A stretch of 64,000 bases of DNA from IMGVR_UViG_3300009103_000001:62001-126000, one strand, 5' to 3'; positions 3,727 to 55,800 are shown, counted from the stretch's first letter. Numbers and translations: made by a program. Notes: generated from the letters alone by a model not told the origin.

Positions 3727-4728
3727 ATGAGAAATATTATAAAAAAAATATTAAAAGAAAGTTCAGATTTTGATTGGGTTAGGGATATTGAAGTTGAGAC
3801 TGATTTAACACCGTCACAAATTGTTCATAGATATGATTCTTTACCAAGTGAGATTGTTGGCCCAATGATTAGTAATGGTTTTTTTGATGTATACTATGAA
3901 GACGCTGCCGGAAAATATATTTTAAAAACTGATAGTTGGTGTGACTTTATACCATTATTTAAAAATATTGATAGTCGTTATGGGTATATGGGTAGAGGTT
4001 TAGCTGAAAGAATATTTTGTGATGATGAGGATTATTGGGAACCATATGATTCACATGATTTAGTTTATGATTGGATAAACCAAGTTTGGGATTTTGTTAC
4101 GCGAGATAAAACTTTATACAAATATATAGTAGAATGGATTAATGATAATCTTATTGGTGATGAAATGCATTTTGAGAGAAAAGAAACAACTTTAACAAAA
4201 GAAGATGTTCTTGATTGGTCTGCTGATTCTGATGTTTTGGGTGAAATGATTGATGAATTAGATGTTTTTGAAGATTTAAAACTTGAATTAACTTGGGCCT
4301 ATGGTTCAGCATATAATGTTGCGGCTAGAGATGGAATATATAACTCAGCTGTTGGAGCTGTAATGGATTTCTTTGGTAAAGGTGAGTGGGTACCCAAAGA
4401 AAAGACAGCGAAGTATACATTAAATTTTGACATCACAGATTTAATACAAGATGTTTTAGTGGAGGGAATAGAAAATTGTTGGGACCAATGTAGTAAATAT
4501 TGGAACCCAAAAAACAGAGATTTGGGGGACCAAACAGAAGAAGAAGCTTTTGAAGAGTGGTGTGAAGAATGTTGGGATTTCCCTTTTAGTGAGTTCGGTA
4601 ATTTTATTGATTTTTTTGAATTTTACTTGGATGATAGGGATGAATTATTAACTCCAAGGTTTGATGAATACCCAGATGATAGTAAGATATATCCTTATTT
4701 TGTAGAAGATGTGTATGATAGAATATGA
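3727..4728 (+). CDS. Leader-bearing acidic protein (MRNIIKKILKESSDFDW)
   Basis: Start moved from TTG 3604 to ATG 3727, which follows ATATTTAT at 3712 and begins the shared leader. Confidence 0.8.
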   Translation: MRNIIKKILKESSDFDWVRDIEVETDLTPSQIVHRYDSLPSEIVGPMISNGFFDVYYEDAAGKYILKTDSWCDFIPLFKNIDSRYGYMGRGLAERIFCDDEDYWEPYDSHDLVYDWINQVWDFVTRDKTLYKYIVEWINDNLIGDEMHFERKETTLTKEDVLDWSADSDVLGEMIDELDVFEDLKLELTWAYGSAYNVAARDGIYNSAVGAVMDFFGKGEWVPKEKTAKYTLNFDITDLIQDVLVEGIENCWDQCSKYWNPKNRDLGDQTEEEAFEEWCEECWDFPFSEFGNFIDFFEFYLDDRDELLTPRFDEYPDDSKIYPYFVEDVYDRI

Positions 4729-6785
4729 GTAAAACTAAAATAAATAATAATGATTTTGAATGGGCCAAAGACATCCCATTAATTATGGATACTTGTGAAG
4801 CGTATGGTATATTAAAACCAGGTGATGAAATTATTATTGATGCGATAGATAATTGGGAGGATAACCCAAATCAATGGAATGATACTGATGAGATACAAAC
4901 CTTTTATAGTGTTAAAGCAAAGGTATTAGCTTTAGATGAGTGTAACAATATACATAGAAATAATGAAAGTAATGCTAATACAATTCTAGTATCAATAGAA
5001 GAGGATGGTTATTATGGGTTTGATGATTTATGGGTTGAAGATTTTGTTGGGACATTACCATCACAGTGTCAAAAAGATAATTGTATGTTTTTAATTTGTG
5101 ACACAAATGAGGAAGAATACCAAATAAAATTAATTGAACCATCGTTAAATGAGTCTGATGATTTTAAATGGGTTGATGGGATACCTAAAGATTATTACCC
5201 ACCAGACTTAGAGTCTGGACTTAAAGGTTTAGAAAAATGGGTGGGACAAGCTTATCAAATAGATGATGAGATAGGCCTTTCTGTTCAGGATGTAAAAGAA
5301 AATCCGAACAAAGAGAATATTCAAGATTTAATAAATGTTCTTAAACATTGGAAACCATATCATGATGGTGATGAAGTTTATTGGGCCGTGGAAGACCTTA
5401 TTTCTTCAATAAACCCATTTAGGTTTCAAGACTTAAATAATATGGGATTATTTGAATCTGATTTGGATTGGGTTAATAATACATCAAATAAGATACAGAA
5501 CACTGGTATTGGTCACGATGGACATATAATTTCTTTACAAGAAGTTTATTTCGATTTTTTAAGAACAATAGCTAAGGTTGAGGGTAATTATAACCCACGA
5601 CTTGAATCACACGCTACATTAGACACCAAATATACTAGAAAAGTAAGGGATTATTTAAATTTGAACAGTAGAGACTATCAAGGATTAGCACGTGAATTAC
5701 TTCGTATAGGTTTGGATGAAGCTTTTAAAATGTATTTTGATAATAAGCCACAATTAAGTGAATCTGATGAATTAAATTGGGTTAAGAGCACTGGTTTAGG
5801 TAAAGTAGATTTAAGAGATTGTAAACCTGGTGATATTTTAATCACTAGAAGTGGTAAAACTGTTGAGTATGTTGGCCCAACGGAAAAAGGTAATTATTAC
5901 GACCACGTAGTAAAATATAATGATGGCCATAGTTATGGTAGTAGGACACACGATGGTTATGTGTTTAGGAAAAATAGGCGAGATGATGATGAAGATATCA
6001 TTCATGTGTTAAAAGAATATAAAAAAACAATAACTGAGGCAGCAGGGATTTCATTTGAAGTGAGAAAATGGGGTGAAATTATCTATAATGAGATAATGAA
6101 TAACCCTGATGAGAAAAAAAGGTTAATCATTGATGGTTATGACCACCCTGAAGCGTTCAACGGATTCCCAATAGACTATGTTGTGATAGATTTTTACGAT
6201 AAATTAACGGGATATGGTCAAGAACATTCAGGATATGATAAAGATGGTAACTATGTTGTATTATTATACATACAACCGCAACTAATAAATAATGAATATA
6301 GAGGATATGATTTAAAATCGGCATTAAATCATGAAATGAAACATGCTTGGGAGGACTATCAAAGAGTATCAAAAGGTTATACTAATATTGAACAAACTAA
6401 AGAATCACAAGAGTTATATAATAAAGATTTCATACATTTAATGAGTGATGAAAATATTAAAGGGCCCATTAAAACAGTGTTAAAATATTTTTATTATTTA
6501 ACCAATTTAGAAAAAGGTCCTTATATGGAGAATGTTTATGATAGAAATCCGGCGTATGAAAATATGATTAGAAAAATTATATCTAAAGATTTTGAACAGT
6601 TTAAAGACCGTTTTGATTTAGATGTTAATTGGCATTTAGTAAATACAGCTTATGATATACCATTTGTAAAAAAATTTAAAACTCCATTAGATTTTATTGA
6701 CTATAGTTCTTCAGAACTTAAAAAAAGAGCAATTAAAGTTTTAAAAAAAATTAATAAAATGAAATACATACATGGAATGTTGTAA
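4725..6785 (+). CDS. Putative multi-module polyprotein with C-terminal HExxH metallopeptidase-like domain
   Basis: Internal linkers LNESDDFKW, LFESDLDW, LSESDELNW and ITE; HEMKH at ~6330. Confidence 0.8.
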   Translation: MSKTKINNNDFEWAKDIPLIMDTCEAYGILKPGDEIIIDAIDNWEDNPNQWNDTDEIQTFYSVKAKVLALDECNNIHRNNESNANTILVSIEEDGYYGFDDLWVEDFVGTLPSQCQKDNCMFLICDTNEEEYQIKLIEPSLNESDDFKWVDGIPKDYYPPDLESGLKGLEKWVGQAYQIDDEIGLSVQDVKENPNKENIQDLINVLKHWKPYHDGDEVYWAVEDLISSINPFRFQDLNNMGLFESDLDWVNNTSNKIQNTGIGHDGHIISLQEVYFDFLRTIAKVEGNYNPRLESHATLDTKYTRKVRDYLNLNSRDYQGLARELLRIGLDEAFKMYFDNKPQLSESDELNWVKSTGLGKVDLRDCKPGDILITRSGKTVEYVGPTEKGNYYDHVVKYNDGHSYGSRTHDGYVFRKNRRDDDEDIIHVLKEYKKTITEAAGISFEVRKWGEIIYNEIMNNPDEKKRLIIDGYDHPEAFNGFPIDYVVIDFYDKLTGYGQEHSGYDKDGNYVVLLYIQPQLINNEYRGYDLKSALNHEMKHAWEDYQRVSKGYTNIEQTKESQELYNKDFIHLMSDENIKGPIKTVLKYFYYLTNLEKGPYMENVYDRNPAYENMIRKIISKDFEQFKDRFDLDVNWHLVNTAYDIPFVKKFKTPLDFIDYSSSELKKRAIKVLKKINKMKYIHGML

Positions 6786-6810
6786 TTGTAATATATTTTT
6801 ATTATATTTG
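6780..6810 (+). promoter_or_regulatory. Bacteroidota sigma-A-type promoter (TTG-N20-TATATTTG)
   Basis: Matches the -33/-7 consensus TTG...TAnnTTTG upstream of ATG 6816. Confidence 0.55.
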
Positions 6811-8847: not shown

Positions 8848-8848
8848 T

Positions 8849-12415: not shown

Positions 12416-15406
12416 ATGAGTATTTCGTGTCCATTAACATTAAGGTTAGTAAAAGGTAGTAAATTAACATTTGCTGAGTTAGATAATAATTTTATCTCAC
12501 TAAGAGATTGTATATATAGTATTGATAATTTAGACACATTTGTTACCGGAGGAACTTTTAACCCAACAACAAACACTATTATTTTTAGTGGTAATACAGG
12601 TTTCCCTTCTTTTAGTGTTGATGTTTCGGCTTTAAACGATGGTTATTGGACTGCGGGTACTGGTACAAGTGCGGTAAAACTTATTAATAGTAGTAGTAGT
12701 GCTGGAGGTAATTATAGTGTTGCGGAAGGATTCCAAACATCGGCAAACGCTCATTATTCACACGCTGAAGGTATTGGTACGGCGGCTGGTGGTGAAGCTT
12801 CACATGCTGAAGGTAGAAATACAACGGCAAGTGGTTTATATTCTCACGCAGAAAATAATACTACACAAGCTATAGGTAATAATTCACATGCTGAAGGTTA
12901 TTTAACAATTGCTAGTGGTATTCGCTCACATGCAGAAGGTGCAGAAACTGTCGCTAGTGGTAACACTTCACACGCAGAAGGTAGGTTAACAATAGCGGGT
13001 GGTGACTATTCACACGCTGAAGGTGCTGGTTCACTTGCTATACCTAATAGAGCAAGTGGTTTTGCTTCTCATGCAGAAGGTTCAGAAACAACAGCTAGTG
13101 GATATTATTCACACGCAGAAGGTAGTAGTACTGTTAGTAGTTATTACGGTTCACATGCAGAAGGTGGTTTTACCACGGCTAGTGGATTATACGCACACGC
13201 AGAGGGACATGGAAATGTTGCTAGTGGTGAGGCTTCACATGCAGAAGGTGGTAAAGGACCAAGTCTTGGGACTGGTAATATAGCTAGTGGAAACGCTTCA
13301 CACGTAGAAGGCGGATATGTCCAAGGTGGTAGACCAACAGCAGAACAAGCGACATCAGCAACTACTTGGTCATCCCATGCAGAAGGTGTTGGAACTTTAT
13401 CTAGTGGTAGAGGTTCTCACGCTGAAGGTGGTGGAACAACAGCTAGTGGAGATTATTCACACGCAGAAGGTGATGGTACAATGGCTATTGGGGATGAGTC
13501 TCATGCGGAAGGACAAGGAACTACCGCTAGTGGTCTACAATCACACGCAGAAGGTGCTGGTACAAGTGCGACTAAAGCACAAGCACACGCAGAAGGTTCT
13601 ACTACTACGGCTAGTGGTATTGCTTCACATTCAGAAGGTAGGTTAACAACAGCTAGTGGATATTATTCACACGCAGAGGGTTGGGAAACTAAAGCTACGG
13701 CTTTTGCCGCTCATGCAGAAGGTAGGGGTAGTATAGCTGATGGTATATGTGCTCACGCAGAAGGTGGTGCATATACTGGTAAATACTTAGCAACATCAGC
13801 AACCACTTGGTCCGCACACGCAGAGGGTTATGGTACGTTAGCTTCAGGTGGTTTGTCACACGCAGAAGGTCATCAAACAAAGGCTAGTGGGGAATTTTCT
13901 CACGCTGAAGGTGATGGTACACTAGCTAGTAATAAAGCCTCACACGCTGAAGGTCATAACACCACAGCCAGTGGATATTATGACCACGCGGAAGGTGATG
14001 GTACTACTGCAAGTGGTTTTTATGGTTCTCACGCAGAAGGTTATTTAACAACCTCAAGTGGTGGTTATGGTTCACATTCTGAAGGAAATAGTACCTTAGC
14101 GAGTGGTGAAGCTGCTCACGCGGAGGGTAACAATACGGTCGCTAGTGGAAGTCCTTCTCACGCGGAAGGTAGTAATACCAGAGCGACTGGTCAAGAATCA
14201 CACGCGGAAGGTTATGGTAATACAGCAAGTGGTAGAGCTTCACACGCTGAGGGGGGTGTATGGTTTAATGGTAAAACAGAAGTTGTCGCCGGAACTTCAG
14301 CAACAACATATTCAGCACATGCTGAAGGTTATAATACTTTAGCTAGTGGTATTGCGTCACATACTGAAGGTTATGGTACAATTGCTAGTGGTAATTACTC
14401 TCACGCTGAAGGAGCAAATACAATAGCGAGTGGTTTATATTCTCACGCTGAAGGCGGTACCCTATTGGGTGACATTAATAGAGCAATTGGTGTTTCTTCA
14501 CATGTAGAAGGTGGTAGTATTGGTGGAAGTGGTGATGCCACATCCGCAACAACATTTTCAGCACACGCAGAAGGAGTAGGAACTTTAGCCAGCGGAATGG
14601 GTTCTCACGCACAAAATCGTAATACAACTGCTAGTGGTGATTATTCTCACGCAGAAGGATTTAGTACAACTGCTAGTGGTATTAATGCTCACGCTGAGGG
14701 TAGTGTAACTATAGCTGAAGGAAGTCATTCTCACGCAGAAGGATTTAATACAAAGTCTATTGGGTTGGCCTCACATGCTGGAGGACAAACCTCAATAGCT
14801 TCAGGTTCAACTTCTTTTGTTCATTCAATAAATTCAGTAGTAGTTGGTGATTATTCTGCAATTCTTGGTGGTTCTGGTAATACAATAAGTAATAATGTAT
14901 TGAGAAGTGTTATATTAGGTGGTTCAAACATCACAGGAACAACAAATGATACAGTTTATTTACCAAATGTAGATTTATGTAAGTTTGGTGGAACATTATA
15001 CACCTCATCAATATCTGGGTGTTCACCGGTTACAATAAGTGATGTAGAGTTAAGTGGTAATTTAACATATTCTAATAATACTAAAGTAAGTACTACAGGA
15101 AATACCGTACCAAATATTGTAGGTAAATCCATATGGACAATAGCTATAACATCAGCGGACGATGAAACAATATTGGCCAATGGTAGTGATGGACAAAGAT
15201 TAGTCATATATACAATAAGTACAGTAGAAAGTGGGGCAATAGTAGTTACACCAACAACGCCTAATGGTTTTGTTACTTTTACCTTAAGTGCTAGTTATAT
15301 CCCACTTGAACAAGTAGGTTCAGCATCTATAGAGTTAATCTATGATAGTAATTATGGTTGGTCTGTACTGGGTGGTCACGGATATACATTAACTACAACA
15401 CTTTAA
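12416..15406 (+). CDS. Fibre/adhesin protein with about 45 SHAEG (YadA head-like) 14-aa repeats
   Basis: N-terminal LRLVKGSKLTFAELDNNF typical of phage fibres; repeat SHAEGxxTxASGxx; ATATTTAT at 12392. Confidence 0.85.
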   Translation: MSISCPLTLRLVKGSKLTFAELDNNFISLRDCIYSIDNLDTFVTGGTFNPTTNTIIFSGNTGFPSFSVDVSALNDGYWTAGTGTSAVKLINSSSSAGGNYSVAEGFQTSANAHYSHAEGIGTAAGGEASHAEGRNTTASGLYSHAENNTTQAIGNNSHAEGYLTIASGIRSHAEGAETVASGNTSHAEGRLTIAGGDYSHAEGAGSLAIPNRASGFASHAEGSETTASGYYSHAEGSSTVSSYYGSHAEGGFTTASGLYAHAEGHGNVASGEASHAEGGKGPSLGTGNIASGNASHVEGGYVQGGRPTAEQATSATTWSSHAEGVGTLSSGRGSHAEGGGTTASGDYSHAEGDGTMAIGDESHAEGQGTTASGLQSHAEGAGTSATKAQAHAEGSTTTASGIASHSEGRLTTASGYYSHAEGWETKATAFAAHAEGRGSIADGICAHAEGGAYTGKYLATSATTWSAHAEGYGTLASGGLSHAEGHQTKASGEFSHAEGDGTLASNKASHAEGHNTTASGYYDHAEGDGTTASGFYGSHAEGYLTTSSGGYGSHSEGNSTLASGEAAHAEGNNTVASGSPSHAEGSNTRATGQESHAEGYGNTASGRASHAEGGVWFNGKTEVVAGTSATTYSAHAEGYNTLASGIASHTEGYGTIASGNYSHAEGANTIASGLYSHAEGGTLLGDINRAIGVSSHVEGGSIGGSGDATSATTFSAHAEGVGTLASGMGSHAQNRNTTASGDYSHAEGFSTTASGINAHAEGSVTIAEGSHSHAEGFNTKSIGLASHAGGQTSIASGSTSFVHSINSVVVGDYSAILGGSGNTISNNVLRSVILGGSNITGTTNDTVYLPNVDLCKFGGTLYTSSISGCSPVTISDVELSGNLTYSNNTKVSTTGNTVPNIVGKSIWTIAITSADDETILANGSDGQRLVIYTISTVESGAIVVTPTTPNGFVTFTLSASYIPLEQVGSASIELIYDSNYGWSVLGGHGYTLTTTL

Positions 15407-27173: not shown

Positions 27174-27764
27174 TTAGTTTTCATAATCTTCGTCATATTC
27201 CCTAGGGTCAAAACCAGATTGTCTTTTTTCGTATTCCTCAGTGTCTAATTCAGCTTCATACGCTCTACCATCCTCAAAACCTTTATTATATATTTTTTCT
27301 AATTTATTTTCTACTTCTTTTTCTTCACAATCCTCATACCCTTTTTCATGGCCAGCGTCATAACCTTCTTCATACCCAATATCCTTAGCTTCATCAATTT
27401 CATCCTCACAATCATATCTTGCATCTCGGCCCCCATCATGAAAACCCTCATTATAACCTTGTTGTTCACCCTCTTCCCAACCTTCTTGTTGTCCTTTTTG
27501 TCTACCATTGTCATAAATCTCTTCAGAAAAATTATATAAAACATTAGTCATTTCATCTAGTTTATCAACATCTAAACCTAAATTATAAATAAAGTCTACA
27601 AGTTTATATGTGCGGTTTTCTGGGTCATGAATATAATAATCCCAATCCTGTAAATCACTTAAGTCATTAGCAATATCAGTTTTAGAGGCCGGTTCAATAT
27701 CTCCAACCCAATCAAAATCATTATCTTCCTTTAATATTTTCTTAATTAAATCTTTCATTATCAT
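27174..27764 (-). CDS. Leader-bearing acidic protein (KDLIKKILKEDNDFDW) with GxxxG repeats
   Basis: GRQKGQQEGWEEGEQQGYNEGFHDG and GYEEGYDAGHEKGYED repeats, FliH/Yae1-like pattern. Confidence 0.8.
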   Translation of the reverse strand: MIMKDLIKKILKEDNDFDWVGDIEPASKTDIANDLSDLQDWDYYIHDPENRTYKLVDFIYNLGLDVDKLDEMTNVLYNFSEEIYDNGRQKGQQEGWEEGEQQGYNEGFHDGGRDARYDCEDEIDEAKDIGYEEGYDAGHEKGYEDCEEKEVENKLEKIYNKGFEDGRAYEAELDTEEYEKRQSGFDPREYDEDYEN

Positions 27765-31242: not shown

Positions 31243-31659
31243 ATGGAAGAATTATATTTAATATATATTAATAAGATTGGTACCACATTTAAAGGTGAAC
31301 ATATGTTTGAATTTTTATTTTCAAACTCCACAACATGGGAATGGGATGAGGGTTGGTATGAATCATCAGTAATTACAGACACAACAGATTTATCACCAGA
31401 CCCATCAGTAGTTAAAATGATAGGTTCATTAAAAACAAACGAATTAGATTTAGATTTAGTGCAAGAATCGGGTGTATTTGATATTTATAACGCAGTTGAG
31501 GATATTATTGCGTTAGGATGGCAGAAATTAAATGAGGATGATGACCCAGATATTGAAAGAATTGTATTTAAATTTGGCGAAAAAAAAGAATTAGTAGAGT
31601 CTAAATTATATATAATGGATTTAGCCTTACAATATAAGGAAAATAAAGTAATTAGATAA
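31243..31659 (+). CDS. Hypothetical late protein
   Basis: ATATTTAT at 31231; 138 aa. Confidence 0.8.
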   Translation: MEELYLIYINKIGTTFKGEHMFEFLFSNSTTWEWDEGWYESSVITDTTDLSPDPSVVKMIGSLKTNELDLDLVQESGVFDIYNAVEDIIALGWQKLNEDDDPDIERIVFKFGEKKELVESKLYIMDLALQYKENKVIR

Positions 31660-33521
31660 TGAAAAGATTAGAAGATAAAAATAAAGACTTGGATTGGGTT
31701 AAAGATACTGAACCACACACAATAGATAAACTTAGTAATAAAATAAAACATGACGGACCAATGACCATTGATGATGTCATATCTTTTTTAAATAAAGAAG
31801 ACCCTATTTTAAAAGATGAACCTTATTATCCTGATGAACAAAATGAATCAGAAAATGGTGATGAAAGATATCTTTTACAAGATGATGAAAATGTTGATGA
31901 GACTATAACGGTAGGGGAAGATGACCCTGACGCTGAAAGAACAGCAAGTGAGATTAAAAAAAGGGATAAAGATAAAACGGTACGATATACCAATAAAGAA
32001 GGTGATGTTGTTACAGTTGAAAATAAAATTATAACATCAGAGTCTTTTAAAAAAATAGTTAAAAATTACGGTAAAATATCATTGTCGGAGTCAGATATTA
32101 TGAGTATACTTGAAGAAACTCAGAATCCAATTATGTCAAAATCTGAGATAGTAGAATCAATACAAAAAAATTTAATATCTGAAGCAAATATGAATGATAA
32201 TGTAAGAAGAAAATTTGAATCTGGTGAACATGATTACTCAGACCACCTAGAAAGAGAGTTAACTAAAAATATATCTGATGATGTGTTTCGTGAAATACAA
32301 CAAAAAATTAGAGAGAAGGTCGGTAACGATAATGTAACACTTGAAGACGCACAAAGATTATTAGGTACATCACTAATTGAGGCGGCTAAAAAAGAATATG
32401 AATATGGGATTGAAAATTTGGAGAGAAAAGCTGTTGAAATGATTAGACAACAATTTAATATGCCAGCAGACGCTGTTGATGTTGACGCAACAATTACTGG
32501 ATTAAATCCACGTATGGTTATTGGTAGAGAAGTATCACCACAAGAAGCTGAACAATTGACTAGACAAACAGGTTTTAAGGTTGGTTCAGTAGATAAGGGA
32601 CAAATTAAACATCAAAGAGGTAATACACCAAAACCACAAAATATCTCAGATGAAGAAGTTAAGGATGAGATAACAAGAAGACGTTTTACTAACGCTCTTA
32701 TGCATGGGGCAGCTCGAAAATCACAAAACCTACACTTTATGGATGATGAATTGTCTCAAAACGTACCAGATTTATCTAGAAATTATGGTAATATTATGGC
32801 CGCAAATGATTTTAACTATTGGATATTAGATGATGAAACAATAAAAAATGAAGGTAGGAGTGGTGTACACGCAGGAAATGTTAGAATTGACCTTTCTGGT
32901 GATAAACCAAAAATAATAGCACAAGGTATTGTATTTCCAATATTATTACATGAATTAGCGAAAGGTGTTATGGAATTAATGTCATTACATTCTTTACCAC
33001 AAGATAGAAATTTAAGACAACATGTTTTAGATAATACAGACCATTTAGAGGCTGAAACAAACGATATACGATTAGGTCAACATATTTGGACTAAGATAGT
33101 TGAAAACATACCAGTGGATAATCAAGAAGTAATATCATTAACATTTAATTATTTACAACAATTACCAACAAATGATTTTAATAGTTTAATAAAAGACTTA
33201 CTTAATAATAGGGAAGAGGCTAAAAATAGAATTGAAAATATGGCTAATGAAGCGTTGGAACAATTAAGGGATGAAGCTTATAAAGATAGCACTAGTGGTT
33301 ATGAGGATAGTCCAATAGAGGATGATGATAGTGATGTTTTAACACCACCTGAACCTGAAGGTAGAGAAGTTACACCAGAACCAGAAATTGAAGATGTACC
33401 GAAAGAACCTGATTATTCTAGTATGAATAAAAGACAATTAGAGTTAGCTATTGACGCGGCTTTAGATGATGGTAATATGGATTTGGTTAGAAAAATTGGT
33501 TCTTATCTTAGTCAAAAATAA
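31659..33521 (+). CDS. Hypothetical late protein with DLDWVKD N-terminal motif and multiple x-x-E sites
   Basis: 620 aa; LSESDI, LISE and LLHELAKG; immediately upstream of the terminase. Confidence 0.8.
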   Translation: MKRLEDKNKDLDWVKDTEPHTIDKLSNKIKHDGPMTIDDVISFLNKEDPILKDEPYYPDEQNESENGDERYLLQDDENVDETITVGEDDPDAERTASEIKKRDKDKTVRYTNKEGDVVTVENKIITSESFKKIVKNYGKISLSESDIMSILEETQNPIMSKSEIVESIQKNLISEANMNDNVRRKFESGEHDYSDHLERELTKNISDDVFREIQQKIREKVGNDNVTLEDAQRLLGTSLIEAAKKEYEYGIENLERKAVEMIRQQFNMPADAVDVDATITGLNPRMVIGREVSPQEAEQLTRQTGFKVGSVDKGQIKHQRGNTPKPQNISDEEVKDEITRRRFTNALMHGAARKSQNLHFMDDELSQNVPDLSRNYGNIMAANDFNYWILDDETIKNEGRSGVHAGNVRIDLSGDKPKIIAQGIVFPILLHELAKGVMELMSLHSLPQDRNLRQHVLDNTDHLEAETNDIRLGQHIWTKIVENIPVDNQEVISLTFNYLQQLPTNDFNSLIKDLLNNREEAKNRIENMANEALEQLRDEAYKDSTSGYEDSPIEDDDSDVLTPPEPEGREVTPEPEIEDVPKEPDYSSMNKRQLELAIDAALDDGNMDLVRKIGSYLSQK

Positions 33522-39329: not shown

Positions 39330-40460
39330 ATGAAAAAAGTTTTTTTAGAATACGTTTGGTTGGACGGAAATCAACCACAACAATTAAGAAGTAAAACTAA
39401 AGTTGTAAAACCTGAAGATATTAGAAAATATACTGATTCGGGGGTTATAAACCCCGAATATTCGGGATTTATTTGGGATTTACCTAAATGGTCTTTTGAT
39501 GGTAGTTCAACAAAACAGGCTAAAGCTGGAAAGGGGGAAAACACTGATTGTGTTTTAAAACCTGTATTTTCTTGTGATGACCCATTTAGAGGTGATTATC
39601 ATTACATTGTCCTTTGTGAGGTTTTAAATCCAGACGGAACCTTACACCCAACAAATAAAAGAGGTGAGTTAAGGGAGTTTATGGAAAAAAATAAAATAAC
39701 GGACTCTAAAGTTAGTTTAGAAAAAGCCAATTGGTTTGGTTGGGAACAAGAATATACTTTAACCACAAAACCGAATTTTAAAGAAGGTGAAGGATTACCA
39801 CTTGGGTTCAGACCTAATGAAGAACCTAGACCACAAGGAGATTATTATTGTGGTGTTGGAGCAGATAATATCACAGGTAGAAGAATTGTGGAAGAACATT
39901 TAGAAAAATGTGTTGAAGCTGGTTTGGATATCTCAGGTATTAACGCGGAAGTTATGTTAGGGCAATGGGAATACCAAATTGGACCTGTAACATCTCTTGA
40001 AGGGTCGGACCAATTATGGGTTTCTAGATATATTCTACAACGAGTGGCCGAAGAAAATGGTGTTAAAATATCATTTCACCCAAAACCAAAAACTGGTGAT
40101 TGGAATGGTTCAGGATGTCATGTCAATTTCTCAACCCCTGAAATGAGAAAAGAAGACGGTATTAAATTAATTAAAGATACAATGGCTAAATTAACACTTA
40201 CTCATGATGAACATATTAAAGTATATGGTTTATATAATGAAAAACGTATGACAGGTGAACATGAAACTTCTAGTATAAACGATTTTAGTTATGGTTATAG
40301 TACAAGAGATACTAGTATCAGAATTCCAGCACAGTCAATAATTGATGGTAAGGGTTATTTTGAAGACCGAAGACCCGCTTCTAATTGTGACCCATACAGT
40401 GTAGCATTACGTATGTTAAAAACTGTATATAACACTGTGAATGAAACAGTAGAAGTTTAA
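39330..40460 (+). CDS. glnII: Glutamine synthetase type II
   Basis: EYVWLDG, LRSKTK, WSFDGSST, EQEY, NAEVMLGQWEYQIGP, DWNGSGCH, SIRIP and YFEDRRPASNCDPY. Confidence 0.95.
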   Translation: MKKVFLEYVWLDGNQPQQLRSKTKVVKPEDIRKYTDSGVINPEYSGFIWDLPKWSFDGSSTKQAKAGKGENTDCVLKPVFSCDDPFRGDYHYIVLCEVLNPDGTLHPTNKRGELREFMEKNKITDSKVSLEKANWFGWEQEYTLTTKPNFKEGEGLPLGFRPNEEPRPQGDYYCGVGADNITGRRIVEEHLEKCVEAGLDISGINAEVMLGQWEYQIGPVTSLEGSDQLWVSRYILQRVAEENGVKISFHPKPKTGDWNGSGCHVNFSTPEMRKEDGIKLIKDTMAKLTLTHDEHIKVYGLYNEKRMTGEHETSSINDFSYGYSTRDTSIRIPAQSIIDGKGYFEDRRPASNCDPYSVALRMLKTVYNTVNETVEV

Positions 40461-42172: not shown

Positions 42173-42213
42173 AGTAATAAATGTTTTAAGTGATTTTTAA
42201 ATAATTAATTGAA

Positions 42214-42243
42214 CAAATATAATAATATTATTTTTATTGGCAA
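42214..42243 (-). promoter_or_regulatory. Bacteroidota-type promoter TTG-N19-TATATTTG
   Basis: Consensus match upstream of 42172. Confidence 0.6.
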
Positions 42244-42289
42244 TGGAATAAGTGAATTTATTGCATATTTATTAAGAAAAGTATTAAAT

Positions 42290-43018
42290 ATGAAAATATT
42301 AAAACCAGGAGATGAGGGATATGGTTATATCATTGAGTATGATGCCGGATTTATTTCACCATCATTAACATGTAAAGACGGTGTGTGTTCTAATTCTAAT
42401 TTGATTAAAGAATTTAAATCTGGTTTAAATTTCGGATTAGATGGGGAGTTACCAGATAAAATAGAATTATACGCTGTTCTTCAAAAATGGGGTGTGGAGA
42501 ATAAAAATGGTAGAGTATATACAGAAGAAATTTTAAAAAGAGAGGCAAAAAGATACCAAGAATTTATAGATATGGGTACATCACTCGGTGAATTGAATCA
42601 CCCAGAATCATCAATTATTGATGCTGACCGTGTATCACATAGAGTTACAGAAATATGGTGGGAAGGTAGAACATTAATGGGCAAAATCGAATTAGACACA
42701 ACACCAGGTTATTTAAGTGGTGGTGTGATTAGTTCTGTTGGTGATAAAGTTCTTAATATGATTAGAAAGGGATGGACTGTTGGCATATCTTCTAGAGGTG
42801 TCGGTTCGTTAAAACAAGAAGGTGGTAAAAATGTTGTTCAAGACGATTTCGAATTAATATGTTGGGATATTGTAACATCACCATCTACACCAGGTTCTTG
42901 GATATCGATAAGTCAACAAGATTTGACACCATATACAGAATCAGTTAAAAAAAATAATAATTTATTATCCGAAGAAGAACATACATTATTGAATAATTTA
43001 AATAAATTTTTATTATGA
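42290..43018 (+). CDS. Prohead core protein protease (T4 gp21-like)
   Basis: NKNGRVY, LGELNHP, VSH, GISSRGVGS and DIVTSPSTPGS; start moved to ATG 42290 after CATATTTATT at 42264. Confidence 0.92.
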   Translation: MKILKPGDEGYGYIIEYDAGFISPSLTCKDGVCSNSNLIKEFKSGLNFGLDGELPDKIELYAVLQKWGVENKNGRVYTEEILKREAKRYQEFIDMGTSLGELNHPESSIIDADRVSHRVTEIWWEGRTLMGKIELDTTPGYLSGGVISSVGDKVLNMIRKGWTVGISSRGVGSLKQEGGKNVVQDDFELICWDIVTSPSTPGSWISISQQDLTPYTESVKKNNNLLSEEEHTLLNNLNKFLL

Positions 43019-43296
43019 AAAAAATAATTAAATTAAACGAAAACGATATAGGGAACTTGGTTAAGAAAATAATCAAGGAAGATAGAACTGATTTTGAAAA
43101 AGTTTATATAATAGTTAATAGAGAAATACACGGTTATGAGGCGGTAGAGAATGTATATAAGACGTTGGAAGATGCGGTAAAAGATGATGTATTTGACAGA
43201 TACGAACAAACGCCAGAAATACTAAACGACCCAAATGATGGGGGGTTATATGGTATGAGTGAAACATTTTATATATTACCTTATAAAGTAAATTAA
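43015..43296 (+). CDS. Leader-A cargo protein (MKKIIKLNENDIGNLVKKIIKE)
   Basis: Leader shared with six other ORFs. Confidence 0.8.
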   Translation: MKKIIKLNENDIGNLVKKIIKEDRTDFEKVYIIVNREIHGYEAVENVYKTLEDAVKDDVFDRYEQTPEILNDPNDGGLYGMSETFYILPYKVN

Positions 43297-43313
43297 AAAT
43301 AATTTTTATTATA

Positions 43314-43634
43314 ATGAAAAGAATTGAAAAACAAAAGAGACGGTTAATTGAAGAAGCTAATAAAAGGGTTCTAAAGGAATCCGCTGAATTGACTGAATTA
43401 CACGATGATGTATTATACTTAACACCTGAATACCGTTTGACTGGTAATAGGGGTGAGGGTGTTCGTGTTTATGAAGAAATAATGGATACTGTTAATTCAT
43501 ATGGTATAGAACCATCTGATGAGGCTAAAGCTTTAATTAAAAGACTTGAATACGACCTTAGTGCTTTAGAGGGTTTCGATGAAAGAGTGGTAAAATTATA
43601 TGAATCTTTAAGTGGAATAAATATTAATGAATAA
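43314..43634 (+). CDS. Leader-C cargo protein (MKRIEKQKRRLIEEANKRVLKE)
   Basis: Leader related to those of 54431 and 54613. Confidence 0.8.
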   Translation: MKRIEKQKRRLIEEANKRVLKESAELTELHDDVLYLTPEYRLTGNRGEGVRVYEEIMDTVNSYGIEPSDEAKALIKRLEYDLSALEGFDERVVKLYESLSGININE

Positions 43635-43641
43635 AATAATT

Positions 43642-43980
43642 ATGAAAAAAATAATTAAATTAAACGAAAACGATATAGAAAATTTGGTTAAGAAAATAAT
43701 CAAGGAAGAGGGTGAAGAGTATAGAAGTAAAGACCCAGACCAATTGGATATGTTTGATGGCACAGTTAAAGATAGGGAATTAGAACAAGAATATAAAGAA
43801 TGGGAAGAAGAGGATGATAAAATGACAGATATATATAATGATATTTATGACACACTTGAACCGGTATTGAATAATATTCTTGATAAGTATGGAGAAGATT
43901 TTGATTTAATCGCCAATGATGACATGATTCAAAACATAGTAGAGGATTGGATGTATCCAGATGGAGGTGATGAAGATTAA
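43642..43980 (+). CDS. Leader-A acidic cargo protein
   Basis: Start moved to ATG 43642 at the leader. Confidence 0.8.
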   Translation: MKKIIKLNENDIENLVKKIIKEEGEEYRSKDPDQLDMFDGTVKDRELEQEYKEWEEEDDKMTDIYNDIYDTLEPVLNNILDKYGEDFDLIANDDMIQNIVEDWMYPDGGDED

Positions 43981-44010
43981 AAGGATAATAATATTTATAA
44001 TAAAATAATC

Positions 44011-45156
44011 ATGAAAAAAATAATTAAATTAAACGAAAACGATATAGAGAATTTAGTTAAAAAAATAATCAAGGAAGATAGGTTACAAGAATTAGATAAA
44101 TTAACTTATGATAGTGCAGCTGAAAAAGCTTCAGAAAGAGGTATACCCGCTTTATCTGATAGATTTAGAAAACATGGACAAGAACATGGTCTAGGAAAGG
44201 AAAAAGAACAATTCACTTTAGTGATTGACCATAGCAGTCTTGGAGAAAGGGAATATACTTATAAAGTTGAGTCTGTGGAGGAAATGGAAGATGGTAAAAC
44301 TTTAAAAATAAAATTAGTTGACATAGATAACCCACAAAATGTTCATACATATACAGGAAGTATTCGACTCACCAACCCAAACAAAAACAGTAGGTCACTT
44401 AAACGTGGGGATTATAAACTAATTTTATATTTTAGAGATAATTATTATACTTTAGCTAAAACAAGAAAAGATGCTAAAAATTTATTAAATATGTTAATTA
44501 AAAATATGGGTGGTAAACACATGTTCCACCCACTAAAAAATATAGACCCTAGAACTTTAACTCTTGGGTATTCAAATTTTGGTGAAAATATTAAAAGAAG
44601 AAAAACACTTAGTGAAGATAGAACTGATTATGAGATGAGTGGTGCTAGAAGTCGTAAAGACTATGTCTCTAATCCAAGAGAAAGAGATATTACTGGAATG
44701 TTCGGTAAATATTCTGAAGATGTACCACCAATGGTAATTAGATACATGAGAAAAAATCCTGAAGCTATTGTAAAAAGATTATATAAAATATATGGTGATA
44801 AAATATATGATTATATACCACAACAAGTAGATATGGATTTAGTTAGAAATAACCCGAATGATGCCGATTTAGGGGCACAAGTTAGAAGTCGTTTTAATTC
44901 TGAAAATATTAATGAATGTGGTGAAGGGGGTTATATGACAGAAGATGGTTGTGTTGATTATGTCGAGGAAAATAGAAGACCTAGAAGAATATCTGAATCA
45001 AACGGTAAAGGTTGTGCTGATACAGAAAAAGGTTGTATTAGAAAAAGAAAAAGTGGTTGGGTAATATTAAATAATAAAAAAGGTGGTGTTTGGAGAAAAT
45101 GTTCTAGTAGAAAAAACTGTGAAGAACAATTAGATGCATATCACGCAAATCAATAA
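44011..45156 (+). CDS. Leader-A multi-module protein
   Basis: ATATTTAT at 43991; internal LQE, LSE, INE and ISE sites separate modules. Confidence 0.85.
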   Translation: MKKIIKLNENDIENLVKKIIKEDRLQELDKLTYDSAAEKASERGIPALSDRFRKHGQEHGLGKEKEQFTLVIDHSSLGEREYTYKVESVEEMEDGKTLKIKLVDIDNPQNVHTYTGSIRLTNPNKNSRSLKRGDYKLILYFRDNYYTLAKTRKDAKNLLNMLIKNMGGKHMFHPLKNIDPRTLTLGYSNFGENIKRRKTLSEDRTDYEMSGARSRKDYVSNPRERDITGMFGKYSEDVPPMVIRYMRKNPEAIVKRLYKIYGDKIYDYIPQQVDMDLVRNNPNDADLGAQVRSRFNSENINECGEGGYMTEDGCVDYVEENRRPRRISESNGKGCADTEKGCIRKRKSGWVILNNKKGGVWRKCSSRKNCEEQLDAYHANQ

Positions 45157-45158
45157 TC

Positions 45159-45464
45159 ATGAAAGTTAAAAATATGTTATACGCGGGTCTTGGTATGGGT
45201 ACAATGGTATCTAAGAAGACTTATGAAGCTTATGAAAATTTTGTAAAAAGTGGTAAGGAGTTGGACCCAACAGTAAGTTCTACTATTGATGATTTTTTTA
45301 GTGATTTGGAAAATCAAAAAAAAGAAGTTAGAAATAGAGTTGAGGAAATTTTTAGTTTAACAGCGGATAAATTAGGGTACATCAAATTAAATGAGTATGA
45401 AAATTTATTAAAAAGAATAAAAACTTTAGAAGCTGAGTTAGCACAAGAAAAAAATAAAAAATGA
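45159..45464 (+). CDS. Phasin-like coiled-coil protein
   Basis: LYAGLGMG...FVKSGK...LLKRIKTLE resembles PhaF/PhaI-like phasin family proteins. Confidence 0.55.
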   Translation: MKVKNMLYAGLGMGTMVSKKTYEAYENFVKSGKELDPTVSSTIDDFFSDLENQKKEVRNRVEEIFSLTADKLGYIKLNEYENLLKRIKTLEAELAQEKNKK

Positions 45465-45805
45465 AAAAAAGAATTGTAAAACTAAACGAAAACGATATTG
45501 AAAGACTCGTTAATAGAATTATAAAAGAAGATGAAAAAGTATCATCTTCACAACTTAAACAAAAAATGAAACAAACTAGTATGGATACTGGTAGTTTAGG
45601 TTTAACACCAAAAGAAAGAGAAGTCTTTAGTACAGCAATAGATATGTTAAAAGATTTTTTCGCACAACAAGGAAATCAGGCAACAGGTAAAGCTTTAAGT
45701 TTATTTAATAGATTTAAGGATAGTTTAAAAGATGTTAAAGCTGAACCAATTAAATCACCAGAAGAGGAACAAAATACTGGTACAGATGAATTCGCGGACC
45801 AATAA
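45461..45805 (+). CDS. Leader-A cargo protein (MKKRIVKLNENDIERLVNRIIKE)
   Basis: Shared leader. Confidence 0.8.
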   Translation: MKKRIVKLNENDIERLVNRIIKEDEKVSSSQLKQKMKQTSMDTGSLGLTPKEREVFSTAIDMLKDFFAQQGNQATGKALSLFNRFKDSLKDVKAEPIKSPEEEQNTGTDEFADQ

Positions 45806-46823: not shown

Positions 46824-48029
46824 ATGGCAGAGAACAGAAAGTCTATCATCGATGAGGCTCTCTTAGAAAGCGAACAAATTGAAAAAGCTTTCGAAGCTAA
46901 TGCAAAAGAAATACTGACTCAAACTATGAGTTCAGAAATTGAAGAAATGGTAAAGGAATCTTTAGAAGGTTCAAGTAGCTTAACAGAAGACGAAGATGAA
47001 GAAATGTTAGATTTACCTGATATGGGTGATGATGACGAAGATGCCGTCGCTGTTGCTGGTGACGTAGAAGACCTAGAAGACATGGGAATGGAACTAGGCG
47101 ACCTTGAAGGTCTAGAAGACCTTGAAGGGGATGATAACGAAGGACTTGATATCGAAATGATTGATTTGACAGACGCTGACGACACTGAAGTTGTTAGAGT
47201 TTTCAAAAAAATGGGACCAGACGATGAAATCGAAGTGGTTCAAGATGGTGGAAATATTGATATTAAGGATAATGAAACTGGCGCAGAATATAGAGTAGAA
47301 CTTGGTGGTGAAGGTGAAGACCTTGAAGACCTTGAAGGTGATGAAATTGAAATGGAAGACTTAGAAGACGTAGACGTTGAAGGTGATGAAATTGAAATGG
47401 AAGACCTAGAAGGTGATGACACTGAAGGTGAAGAAATTATTTATCAAGTAGAACTTGATGATGAAGATGACACCGTTGAAGAAGCTAGCAGAACATTAGG
47501 TAAGGGAAGTAAAAACTACCCTAAACGTAAAGGTTTACCAAAACCTATAGCTAGTGGAGCTAAGAATGAGTCAATAAAACCAAAGTTCTTAAAAATGATG
47601 AATGAAAATAAAGTTCTAAAAACTGATATCGAAAAAGTTGAATCTGAAAATAAAGAGTTAAAAGAAGACTATAATAAAATGGTTGACGCTCTTAAACAGT
47701 TCAGACAAAAACTTAATGAGGTTGCTGTGTTTAACAGTAACTTAACTTATACAGTTAGATTATTTACCGAACACTCAACTACTAAAGATGAGAAAGTTGA
47801 TGTAATCAAGAGATTTGATGAAGCTAAAACTCTTAAAGAATCTAAAGCTACTTATAAAAATTTAGTTAAAGAAATATCTAAGACAAAGGCTCCAATTAAA
47901 GAATCTATTGAGGAAAAAATTAACGAAACAAAATCTAGTGGTTCAGCACAGGTAACTGAATCTAAAGTTTATGTACACCCAGAGTTAGAAAAAATGAAAA
48001 ACTTATGGGAATATGAGTACAAAAACTAA
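46824..48029 (+). CDS. Prohead scaffolding/core protein (T4 gp22 position)
   Basis: Acidic low-complexity middle, C-terminal coiled coil, many LxE sites; immediately upstream of the major capsid gene. Confidence 0.8.
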   Translation: MAENRKSIIDEALLESEQIEKAFEANAKEILTQTMSSEIEEMVKESLEGSSSLTEDEDEEMLDLPDMGDDDEDAVAVAGDVEDLEDMGMELGDLEGLEDLEGDDNEGLDIEMIDLTDADDTEVVRVFKKMGPDDEIEVVQDGGNIDIKDNETGAEYRVELGGEGEDLEDLEGDEIEMEDLEDVDVEGDEIEMEDLEGDDTEGEEIIYQVELDDEDDTVEEASRTLGKGSKNYPKRKGLPKPIASGAKNESIKPKFLKMMNENKVLKTDIEKVESENKELKEDYNKMVDALKQFRQKLNEVAVFNSNLTYTVRLFTEHSTTKDEKVDVIKRFDEAKTLKESKATYKNLVKEISKTKAPIKESIEEKINETKSSGSAQVTESKVYVHPELEKMKNLWEYEYKN

Positions 48030-50368: not shown

Positions 50369-50803
50369 ATGAAAATTAAAAAAATCATAAAAACTATTTT
50401 GGAATCAGAATTTGACTGGGTTAAAGATTCTGTTTTACATTTTTGGGATATGAATAAAAAATATGTTGTGGATGTTTCAAAGTTAGAAAGATACCCACCA
50501 ATGAGTCTTTCACCAACTTCTGATAGGTATACAGATATATTTATATCAGATATTATAGATTATGGTAAAGAAATAGGGTATGATATAACGGATTTAGGTA
50601 GTACAGCTGATATACAACAACGAGTGCAAGGTTCTTATACCGTTCCTCATGATGTATGTTATATATATTTTAATCCAAACAAATTTGTAGAGTGGGATAT
50701 GTGTGGTATAGACGACCCAACTTGGGATGGTGAATATGAGTTAATGGATGCGGAGAGTTTTATTTATTATATGGAGAATAATTTTATTAAGAATGAACAT
50801 TAA
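50369..50803 (+). CDS. Leader-B cargo protein (MKIKKIIKTILESEFDW)
   Basis: GATATTTATA at 50347. Confidence 0.8.
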   Translation: MKIKKIIKTILESEFDWVKDSVLHFWDMNKKYVVDVSKLERYPPMSLSPTSDRYTDIFISDIIDYGKEIGYDITDLGSTADIQQRVQGSYTVPHDVCYIYFNPNKFVEWDMCGIDDPTWDGEYELMDAESFIYYMENNFIKNEH

Positions 50804-51842
50804 AAAAATTATAAGAGAAGAGTTGGACGATTTTGATTGGGCTAGGGATGATATCTACTTTTCAATAGACTATATTCTAGGTAAACAGATGTATTTTAGG
50901 CATAGTAATATAAATGAACTTGAAAGAGAATATAAAGCTTATAACAATGACAGAATACAACAAATACCAAAAAATAAAATAGTCTTAGGTAATATTAAGT
51001 GGACTAGTATGTTTACGGCAAATTATGTTAAAAATAATATAGCACACATCTATTTACAAGACAGCACTAGTTTACAATATTCAGTGGATATGGTTGAATT
51101 TTATGTAAATAGTGGTATATGGGCTTTAGAGGATGATAATGGTAATATTATTAATGATTTCTCTGGCCAATATTTAAAAGAATCAGAGTTGGATTGGATT
51201 CAAAAATCTGAACCAGATAGAAAAGATATTAGAAGTTTCAATAAAGAAAGGTATAAAACCACTCTTAATTATAATAATGCTGAAATAGGGGATAAATTTA
51301 TCCCACCTGGTAGTCATATGGTATGGACCGTTGATGATAAAGAATTTTGGCGTGGCAAATGGGGTAATGACGAAAATGGAGACCCTGAATATTATAGATA
51401 TTTTATTATATGGATAAAAAATGAGAGGGGTGACCTCAAAAGAAAGTATTATAATAAAACGAATAAATTATTTCCAGGTACTTATAGACCTTGGAGAAAA
51501 ATAGTTGACTCTAATATTAATGAATCGAAAGAGTTTGATTGGGCAAAAGAAATTAAACCTGAAATGACTGCTGAAGCTGTACCACTATATTATAATAAAC
51601 CTCTTTTTTGGTATCATCGGGGTGAACCTAGGCAATGTTGGGGGATGCCTACCATTTATTGGTTATCAAAAAGTTATGTCACTGAAAGGGGTGAAAATAT
51701 ATCTTTATTATGTTATGATGACGGATGTGATGTAGAATCAAAAATTGAATGTAGTGCATTTTATGACTATACAATTGCTAATATGTTTAATGAGGGGACA
51801 CTTAGATTTCAATCACAGTTAAGTGATATTGAACCAACTTAA
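50793..51842 (+). CDS. Putative three-module polyprotein (MNIKKIIREELDDFDW; LKESELDW; INESKEFDW)
   Basis: Start moved to ATG 50793; internal linkers at 51174 and 51516. Confidence 0.8.
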   Translation: MNIKKIIREELDDFDWARDDIYFSIDYILGKQMYFRHSNINELEREYKAYNNDRIQQIPKNKIVLGNIKWTSMFTANYVKNNIAHIYLQDSTSLQYSVDMVEFYVNSGIWALEDDNGNIINDFSGQYLKESELDWIQKSEPDRKDIRSFNKERYKTTLNYNNAEIGDKFIPPGSHMVWTVDDKEFWRGKWGNDENGDPEYYRYFIIWIKNERGDLKRKYYNKTNKLFPGTYRPWRKIVDSNINESKEFDWAKEIKPEMTAEAVPLYYNKPLFWYHRGEPRQCWGMPTIYWLSKSYVTERGENISLLCYDDGCDVESKIECSAFYDYTIANMFNEGTLRFQSQLSDIEPT

Positions 51843-53191: not shown

Positions 53192-53222
53192 CAAAGATAA
53201 TAATTTTTTTTAAACTATCAAA
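53192..53222 (-). promoter_or_regulatory. Bacteroidota-type promoter TTTG-N19-TATCTTTG
   Basis: Consensus match upstream of 53158. Confidence 0.6.
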
Positions 53223-53359
53223 CTATTTTATATTTTTTTTCGATTTTTCTCTAATTATTTTCCATATTGCTTAAGACAATATGGTTAATTACTTTATTCT
53301 TCAAATATAGACCAATTTTTTTAATTTAACAAGATATTTATTAAAAAAGATAATTTAAC

Positions 53360-53764
53360 ATGAAAAAGAAAGTAATTAAATTAAACGAAAACGATATAGA
53401 AAATTTGGTTAAGAAAATAATCAAAGAAGAAGATAAGGAAAAAGTGACAACTTTAACCAGACATCCAGCTTATCCAATTATAGATGAATTGGAAATGACT
53501 TTGGATGAGTTAAAAACAAAATTTAAAAGAGATATCGCAAATAGTGTTTCTGGAGCAGATGGATATCATAGTGAGATAGATACATTCGTGTCAAATTTTA
53601 ATAAATTTATTGGGAAAGTTTCTGATTTGAAAAGTAAGATAAATGACCATCAAATAGCGTCAAAAAAGAAACAAGAGTCAAACGCTCAAATGCAAGAAAG
53701 AAAAAGAGCTCATTGGGATAGAAAAGAAAAAGCTAGAAATGAGGGTAGTAAATACTCATATTAA
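53360..53764 (+). CDS. Leader-A cargo protein
   Basis: MKKKVIKLNENDIENLVKKIIKEE; GATATTTATT at 53333. Confidence 0.85.
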   Translation: MKKKVIKLNENDIENLVKKIIKEEDKEKVTTLTRHPAYPIIDELEMTLDELKTKFKRDIANSVSGADGYHSEIDTFVSNFNKFIGKVSDLKSKINDHQIASKKKQESNAQMQERKRAHWDRKEKARNEGSKYSY

Positions 53765-53777
53765 AGACGTTAAATCT

Positions 53778-54113: not shown

Positions 54114-54134
54114 CCTTTATATATATAAACACAT

Positions 54135-54431: not shown

Positions 54432-54616
54432 TGAATAGACAAGATAAAATACAAAACATACTTAAAGCCAATAAAAGGTTATTAAAAGAAGACCATGAAA
54501 GTACCGATAAAGGTAAGATTGATTATATAAAAGGTGCTTTAGAAAATTTATCATCTGAGGATTTGGATAAGATTTATTTGTCAGTTGAAGAGTATGACCC
54601 AGAATATGAAAAATGA
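54431..54616 (+). CDS. Leader-C small cargo protein
   Basis: MNRQDKIQNILKANKRLLKE. Confidence 0.75.
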   Translation: MNRQDKIQNILKANKRLLKEDHESTDKGKIDYIKGALENLSSEDLDKIYLSVEEYDPEYEK

Positions 54617-55800
54617 GAAGGTTTGATAAAAATAAAAATATATTAGAAGCCAACTTAAGATTAGAAAGAGAATTTATTACCAGTAAATCTCTTTTATTAA
54701 GCACTACAACAAGTAATACATTTATTGAATCTTGTTTAAATAGCCAATATTTTAACGAAGATGAAAAATCTTTTATACTAGAAACAGTATTACCAAATCA
54801 AAAATTAATACAAGAAGGTGGTTGGGATTGGATTAAAGATAATATAATAGAACCCACAAAAAATGCCATAAAAAAAGGTGTAGATAAAGCAAAATCTTTT
54901 TACACTAAAATAAAAGAACTTATTTCTAATATTGGTAAATTTTTAAAAGAAATATGGTCATATATTATAAAGTTTGGTGAATGGTTGTGGGATAAGGTTT
55001 TTGGTATAGTTAAAAATAAAATTAATAAAAATAAAGCTAAGATTGAAAAAAAGTTAGAGGAATTTAAAAATTTACCACCACAAGAAAGAGACACAGAAAT
55101 AGAACAGTTAATCCAAACTGGAGAATTTTGGAAGGATAAGTCTGGTATTAGCACTATTTTAGGTACTTTTAATAGTGATGTTGAGGGCTCAATAAATAAA
55201 ATGAATTCTGGTAGTGAAGCTATAATGGAATATTGGTCACCTGAAGTTATAGACTTTTTTGGTAAAAGTAAAAAAATTCTAAAAGAAGGTAGTAGTAAAG
55301 CAATGAAAGTAGTGGAGTGGGTTGTTCAGGCTGTTAGTTGGGTTATAAAAATACCTCAAAAAGCTTTAGAATGGATTTTTAGTAAAGCGGCCCAAGGTAT
55401 ATTAATACTTTCTAGTATTGCAACTGAAAAGTTTGGTGGTCCTGGTCCATTCAAATTCCCAAATTTAAGTCATCTTATTGGAGCAACTTTACTTACTATA
55501 GCTGAGTCAATAGTTTTTTCACACACAGTTTTTCATACACATTTTAAAGGTAATTTTATTACAGATGTGATTGTAGGTTGGGAACATATCATGGAAGAGG
55601 TTTTAGGAAAAATCGCTGGTAGTTTTGTTAAACCACTTGTTGCAATCATATCGGGTATTGGTATTGTTTTAGGTATAATGGAGATGATTTTTGCTATTCA
55701 ACACATAAGAAAAGAAAAAGACTTATCACAATACGATAAAAAAGATTTAAATCAAGATGGTAAGGGTGATAGTTTCGATGAAAAATTAGCTACTAGTTAA
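54613..55800 (+). CDS. Leader-C protein with amphipathic and hydrophobic C-terminal helices
   Basis: MRRFDKNKNILEANLRLE; internal LIQEGGWDW and ILKE; TM-like segments. Confidence 0.8.
   Translation: MRRFDKNKNILEANLRLEREFITSKSLLLSTTTSNTFIESCLNSQYFNEDEKSFILETVLPNQKLIQEGGWDWIKDNIIEPTKNAIKKGVDKAKSFYTKIKELISNIGKFLKEIWSYIIKFGEWLWDKVFGIVKNKINKNKAKIEKKLEEFKNLPPQERDTEIEQLIQTGEFWKDKSGISTILGTFNSDVEGSINKMNSGSEAIMEYWSPEVIDFFGKSKKILKEGSSKAMKVVEWVVQAVSWVIKIPQKALEWIFSKAAQGILILSSIATEKFGGPGPFKFPNLSHLIGATLLTIAESIVFSHTVFHTHFKGNFITDVIVGWEHIMEEVLGKIAGSFVKPLVAIISGIGIVLGIMEMIFAIQHIRKEKDLSQYDKKDLNQDGKGDSFDEKLATS

Follow-up and report, generated by a model that had tools for sequence, protein, structure and literature searches.

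A recurrent two-part linear motif in a distant T4-like phage: candidate processing junction and retained N-terminal tag

Why would one short acidic-aromatic peptide, of the form D-F-D-W, stand before so many protein segments of a single phage? The question is raised by a stretch of DNA of 64,000 nucleotides (here called the window), bases 62001-126000 of the viral contig IMGVR_UViG_3300009103_000001, which is 210,157 bp long with 29.9% G+C and is 64% complete by CheckV estimate; positions are counted in the window unless the contig is named. The contig is that of a distant, uncultured, marine T4-like phage, with a major capsid protein of the Gp23 family, a large terminase ~30% identical to its counterpart in Flavobacterium phage immuto, and a prohead protease (42209-43018, + strand) of the T4 gp21 family (Peptidase_S77, PF03420, E = 5e-25; also phrog_207). 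Its relatives are known from metagenomes only, some of them marine (Tara).

Recurrence, consensus and modular context

The original prediction counted about 13 copies of the D-F-D-W motif in the window; six-frame and open reading frame (ORF) scans uphold the recurrence and correct the count to 12, at the ORFs it had named. Enrichment is borne out as well. Relative to residue-shuffled proteomes, its regular expression matches 5 times in the window against 0.03 expected and 15 times in the contig against 0.13, and a broader pattern gives 44 matches against 4.4 expected. The recurrence is thereby confirmed as genuine, at more than 100-fold over shuffled proteomes for the original expression. The whole contig holds ~46 copies in 28 of its 266 ORFs, most densely at contig 8-58 kb, outside the window.

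Consensus sequences were drawn from 42 aligned copies and from 619 copies in 184 proteins. The aligned copies give [IL]-N-E-S-D-D-F-D-W-I-K-D-[IV]-x-P, and the full element joins [IL]-(N/K/R)-E to (S/E)-x-D-[FL]-x-W-[IV]-[KR]-D-[IV]-x-P; by these alignments, the D-F-D-W motif makes up the C-terminal half of a linear element in two parts. Among internal copies, 482 of 483 have [ILVMF]-x-E directly upstream, against a background of 22.6%; junctions have I or L at P3 in 87%, mostly N at P2 (56%) and S at P1' in 85%. In the window, 10 of the 12 copies follow an [IL]-x-E site that ends 1-4 residues before the core, much as had been proposed. ORFs 4725 and 31659 had been named as exceptions that begin with the motif and have no leader; both do lack the site, but ORF 4725 is not leaderless, since it begins with the degenerate junction K-I-N-N-N-D-F-E-W. 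The leader M-N-I-K-K-I-I-R-E-E stands in place of I-N-E-S at N-terminal copies, and the first W falls at residue 16 in 59 of the 151 top proteins; a few natural proteins start right at the predicted P1' residue (e.g., M-D-D-F-D-W). Autoproteolysis at N-E-S was considered and rejected, because neither the N nor the S is invariant, the S being replaced by E in most N-terminal copies.

For the leader pattern [KR][KR]-I-[IL]-[KR]-E, 43 matches compare with 2.6 expected, and 39 of the 43 fall inside residues 1-30. The pattern is found in 38 of the 266 ORFs, of which about half have no motif, and internal motif copies occur without a leader; the motif is thus separable from the N-terminal leader, as had been suspected. 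Leaders without D-F-D-W are found in the small ORFs 43015, 43627, 44011, 45461 and 45805, in the interval between the protease and capsid genes, and in ORF 53360.

Judged from sequence, the motif-bearing proteins are built of 1 to 13 heterologous, freely shuffled modules of ~110 residues, with the element in the linker before each. Copies are spaced by a median of 111 residues and number as many as 13 in one protein. Stripped of the motif, the contig's 46 downstream segments form 39 BLAST clusters, and a wider set of 611 modules falls into 141 BLAST components (79 singletons); the modules behind the motif appear mostly unrelated to one another. The three modules of ORF 50793 are also found in other proteins, alone or in a different order. 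In eight large members, Pfam identifies only a NUDIX domain (P0007) and a Phage_lysozyme domain (P0020), neither directly after a motif copy.

An AlphaFold2 model of ORF 50793, built from a 16-sequence alignment, gives predicted local distance difference test (pLDDT) values of 85-95 for two modules, ~30 for the leader and motif, and below 50 for the third junction; in another model, covering a mainly helical family of modules (41 sequences), the module scores 85-93 and the junctions on either side 45-53. Since junction confidence is low beside confident modules, the best-conserved residues of both alignments are modelled as unpacked. The motif is accordingly modelled as an exposed flexible linker peptide, not as a component of the fold, and residues that are conserved yet, in these models, unpacked are the hallmark of short linear motifs recognized by other proteins. 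A Foldseek search of the three-module model against the PDB returned no match below E = 0.1, with weak Tudor/PWWP-like leads only.

These models bear on the view that the motif is a structural N-terminal cap, for instance an opening strand or helix, in a single, highly divergent domain family, and that its recurrence is only paralogy. Within one module family the tag variant does co-vary with the module (e.g., D-D-F-D-W-A-R/K-G), and many modules start with a similar h-x-V-G-D/K-C stretch. However, the motif is unpacked, at low pLDDT, in both models, the three confidently modelled modules differ in secondary structure, the 611 modules scatter over components and singletons as described above, and the motif is far more conserved than the sequence behind it; we regard a structural cap as very unlikely. 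A DNA-level signal that promotes recombination and cassette shuffling at module boundaries would also place a shared sequence at every boundary of shuffled modules. Here, codons at the conserved motif positions vary freely among synonyms, with the usage of the rest of the genome, which shows that selection acts on the motif peptide and not on the DNA; moreover, the shuffling is better seen as a by-product of the shared coding sequence than as its purpose. We reject a DNA-level signal because of this codon usage and give it hardly any credence.

Processing, retention and docking as readings of the element

T4 gp21 cleaves after L/I-x-E and needs nothing more (PMC9026906); the [IL]-x-E of the junction agrees with that rule, and an S77 protease is encoded in the same genome. 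The original interpretation of the motif is supported in part, by the sequence statistics and the linker models; the mature N-terminus and the docking or ejection-order role that it proposed are putative. Because the element fits the T4 logic of gp21 and capsid targeting, we favor reading it as a processing junction combined with a retained N-terminal tag on proteins loaded into the head, a reading that we consider quite possible though short of probable, and for which we infer cleavage, capsid location and tag partner alike. The N-terminal leader M-N-I-K-K-I-I-R-E would act like the T4 capsid targeting sequence and bring the protein into the prohead core; the gp21-family prohead protease would cut after the Glu of every junction, removing the leader and separating the modules; each freed module would keep S-D-D-F-D-W-I-K-D as its new N-terminus; and the retained acidic-aromatic peptide may serve as a common docking tag, for head retention or for a shared partner. 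The capsid protein itself carries L-Y-E51 and I-N-E60 near the position aligned to L-T-E65, the cut site of T4 gp23, a placement consistent with T4-like maturation, though not proof of it.

The two halves of the element are invariably adjacent, and the linker in which they lie is modelled as flexible and accessible; together with the encoded S77 protease, these features would also suit an extended prohead-protease recognition site spanning the whole 15-residue element, in which D-F-D-W provides P' contacts that mark the junctions over other [IL]-x-E sites and has no later role. The original prediction had offered a version of this, with the motif as the P' side of the protease site, which is weakened by several observations. 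The capsid protein, a scaffold-like protein (46824-48029) and the leader-only head-module ORFs have [IL]-x-E without D-F-D-W; three relatives, two of them with a confirmed S77 protease, have no copies; and T4 gp21, as noted, needs only its three-residue rule. Furthermore, some proteins start at the tag or have no upstream Glu (ORFs 4725 and 31659), which would be pointless for a pure cleavage determinant. We judge an extended site without a later role to be unlikely.

A profile search of 1.84 billion cluster representatives found 622 proteins at E <= 0.001, of which 137 reach E <= 1e-10, and DNA-pattern scans showed that other low-G+C viral contigs carry many copies. A 380-kb relative (G001), with a capsid protein 79% identical and a protease 81% identical, has 54 matches. 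Among 80 loci around related capsid genes, motif ORFs occur only in the closest relative checked there, in a variable slot. A word-indexed search restricted to residues 1-40 returned one orthologue only. Pfam, PHROGs, NCBIfam and PADLOC gave no match for the motif proteins, none above the curated cut-off covering the motif, and a literature search with the motif strings and near variants found no relevant paper; the motif is thus undescribed in the libraries and papers searched.

An HslV-family peptidase (phrog_1040, E = 6e-17; contig 143620-144111, minus strand, L153:3620-4108, outside the window) is encoded in both motif-bearing genomes examined, this phage and G001, and not in three motif-free relatives, and the window also encodes a ClpC-like ATPase/unfoldase (23729-26206). 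Acidic-aromatic tails are typical docking peptides. These points, with the position of most arrays outside the structural block, would favor cytoplasmic proteins over head cargo, their junctions being cut by another protease or left uncut and their peptides docking to a common phage or host hub with multi-module avidity. However, the co-occurrence of HslV and motif is confounded by phylogeny, because it compares two closely related genomes with three others, and we know of no sequence specificity in HslV-type peptidases. ClpC was rejected as a lineage-specific partner, being encoded in motif-free relatives as well. A cytoplasmic role would also leave unexplained the near-invariant [IL]-x-E, which follows the gp21 rule, and the leader that the motif proteins have in common with head-module ORFs; we hold it to be improbable.

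Several points weigh against a processing junction with a retained tag. The core head proteins of the phage lack the motif, and cleavage alone leaves the conserved, retained half unexplained, because T4 gp21 cuts without a P' motif. Copies are absent from three more distant relatives (capsid protein ~60% identical), and in two of these, both fetched whole, an S77 protease and ClpC were confirmed; since relatives with the protease do without the motif, it is not required for head assembly. No cultured relative with the motif was found, megablast and tblastn searches against GenBank phage records returning no motif proteins. Most copies (contig 8-58 kb) lie outside the recognizable structural block, and the 10-14% of phage ORFs that bear a leader or tag would make an unusually large head cargo. 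Within modules, [IL]-x-E has an observed/expected ratio of 0.86 against 1.19 in the phage's other proteins, a modest depletion set against an imperfect control. Upstream signals are equivocal: ATATTTAT was rejected as a discriminator, being enriched upstream of head and tail genes and of seven motif genes and also of replication-region genes, so that this candidate promoter, common to motif and head genes, is not diagnostic of expression timing. The T4 late promoter TATAAATA stands before no main head gene and before only 15 ORFs out of 266, and so gives no indication of when genes are expressed.

A broader proposal, which we regard as doubtful, is that a lineage of marine T4-like jumbo phages packs dozens of small effector modules as head polyproteins, cut at a universal junction, with each module keeping a D-F-D-W-I-K-D tag whose binding to a receptor in the capsid or core would control retention or release; the element would then be a natural modular cargo-loading cassette. 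If the junction does both process and tag, head-delivered proteins could be encoded as cuttable strings of interchangeable modules, with a second, retained signal beside the classical capsid targeting sequence. Such a junction would open to study >600 unannotated clusters (~10% of this phage's genes), likely cargo for host takeover or counter-defence, and foreign proteins might be loaded into T4-like capsids by means of its short natural tag and cut site. Should the capsid model prove wrong, the conservation of a 15-residue linear motif over hundreds of unrelated modules would still point to a strong partner.

Copies in the window and neighboring genes

Each junction is given below with the core heptad that lies within it. 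ORF 3727 (+ strand), whose true start is probably the ATG at 3727, has L-K-E-S-S-D-F-D-W-V-R-D at 3751..3786 (core DFDWVRD, 3766-3786), after the leader M-R-N-I-I-K-K-I-L-K-E. ORF 4725-6785 (+) contains four copies: the degenerate N-terminal K-I-N-N-N-D-F-E-W-A-K-D at 4737..4772 (core 4752-4772), with no E at P1, and the internal junctions L-N-E-S-D-D-F-K-W-V-D-G at 5145..5180 (core 5160-5180), L-F-E-S-D-L-D-W-V-N-N at 5445..5480 (core 5460-5480) and L-S-E-S-D-E-L-N-W-V-K-S at 5754..5789 (core 5769-5789). Its C-terminal ~330 residues (5790-6785) are ~70% identical to the C-termini of many metagenomic proteins of 900-1190 residues; these proteins vary in their N-terminal modules, an arrangement that resembles a conserved core behind a variable module array. 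On the minus strand, ORF 27174-27764 has an N-terminal L-K-E-D-N-D-F-D-W-V-G-D at 27699..27734 (core 27699-27719), after a K-K-I-L-K-E leader. ORF 31659-33521 (+) has an N-terminal K-D-L-D-W-V-K-D at 31671..31706 (core 31686-31706), with no [IL]-x-E; its first ~125 residues are variable and bear the motif, and the remainder is conserved in relatives without it.

ORFs 50369-50803 and 50793, both on the + strand, occupy a variable slot after the major capsid gene. The former has an N-terminal I-L-E-S-E-F-D-W-V-K-D at 50393..50428 (core 50408-50428), and its stored ESM Atlas model is of poor quality and uninformative. The latter has three copies: an N-terminal I-R-E-E-L-D-D-F-D-W-A-R-D at 50814..50849 (core 50829-50849), with its W at residue 16; a weak internal junction, L-K-E-S-E-L-D-W-I-Q-K, at 51171..51206 (core 51186-51206), backed by the orthologue P0001; and an internal I-N-E-S-K-E-F-D-W-A-K-E at 51516..51551 (core 51531-51551), modelled as a low-confidence linker. 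In relatives, the same slot holds an ORF that by eye resembles an HNH-type endonuclease (L001:11899-12591 and L007:5138-6553). Finally, ORF 54613-55800 (+) has an internal L-I-Q-E-G-G-W-D-W-I-K-D at 54805..54840 (core GWDWIKD, 54820-54840), 72 residues from its start.

Several leader types were seen besides the one that precedes the motif. ORFs 43015, 43627, 44011, 45461 and 53360 (53360-53764) have a common 22-residue leader, M-K-K-I-I-K-L-N-E-N-D-I-E-N-L-V-K-K-I-I-K-E, with two [IL]-x-E sites; the first four are head-module ORFs that lie within 43015..45805 on the + strand and have no D-F-D-W tag. The relative G007, one of the two motif-free relatives fetched whole, has an equivalent leader, M-K-K-I-I-R-L-T-E-S-D-L-T-R-I-V-K-R-V-I-K-E, in ~10 genes and a further one, M-K-I-I-I-T-E-N-Q-Y-K-L-I-K-E-N, in ~17 genes. 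A third type, M-(K/R)-R-x-x-K-x-x-x-I-x-E-A-N-x-R-L-L-K-E, occurs in three ORFs of the window (43314-43634, 54431 and 54613-55800) and in ORFs of the related loci L001 and L007.

Across the contig, 62 ORFs have ATATTTA(T) in the 60 bases that precede the start, most often 5-18 bases ahead of the ATG and with examples before 33595, 35698, 44011 and 50369; this is a ~six-fold enrichment, and the sequence is a possible phage promoter element. The T4 TATAAATA appears not to be used, and the motif-gene starts that were inspected showed no evident Shine-Dalgarno sequence. Between the portal gene (35698-37575) and the prohead protease gene lies a glutamine-synthetase-like gene (39330-40460; Gln-synt_C and Gln-synt_N). 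Two large ORFs, 12416-15406 and 16650-19469, show repeated phrog_25468 matches (11 stretches in the first) and sit in a region of higher G+C, 35-38% against ~29% elsewhere.

Comparison with known systems

In phiKZ, 201phi2-1 and SPN3US, as proposed here, a gp21-related protease cuts many head proteins after the Glu of a short motif, and internal proteins form paralogous families there; the motif, however, is S/A/G-x-E, and propeptides are removed where here modules would be separated. We know of no retained conserved tag in these phages. The cargo-loading peptides of encapsulins are likewise short and conserved, sit on a flexible linker, and bring unrelated cargo to an HK97-fold shell (shell binding is putative here); they differ in sequence, are usually C-terminal and single, and involve no protease step.

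Polyvalent proteins of phages and conjugative elements combine 2-15 heterologous domains per polypeptide and are predicted to travel with the DNA and then be cleaved into separate units (PMC5512222). The proteins described here resemble them in combining several heterologous domains (up to 13 modules). Some carry a lysozyme or NUDIX domain, the only candidates recognized here for conflict-related enzymatic domains, and PADLOC gave no match. Unlike polyvalent proteins, however, they have no embedded zincin-like metallopeptidase (MPTase) or assemblin peptidase in the eight top proteins or the window proteins, their modules are small (~110 residues) and nearly all unannotated, and a uniform junction peptide stands at every boundary; a term search of Iyer et al. 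2017 (PMC5512222) gave no occurrence of the word "linker".

Parallels are drawn with T4 as well. The first 10 residues of T4 IPIII are a capsid targeting sequence, of which residues 8 and 10 govern processing (PMC9026906), and this sequence is the sole part shared among the diverse T4 internal proteins (PMC3012670). As with IPI-III, the leader here has 9-10 residues and ends in I-x-E (I-R/K-E at residue 9), a gp21-family protease is encoded in the same genome, and diverse, otherwise unrelated mature parts have a common signal, with their genes in variable slots. No homology of the motif proteins to T4 IPI, IPII, IPIII or Alt was detected with Pfam, PHROG or NCBIfam. Unlike in T4, the signal is also internal, with up to 13 copies per protein; a strongly conserved peptide follows the predicted cut site, where T4 has none; and dozens of genes, known here from sequence alone, compare with three in T4. 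The element would thus extend the T4 logic in two ways, by internal junctions and by a conserved acidic-aromatic peptide that remains on each product.

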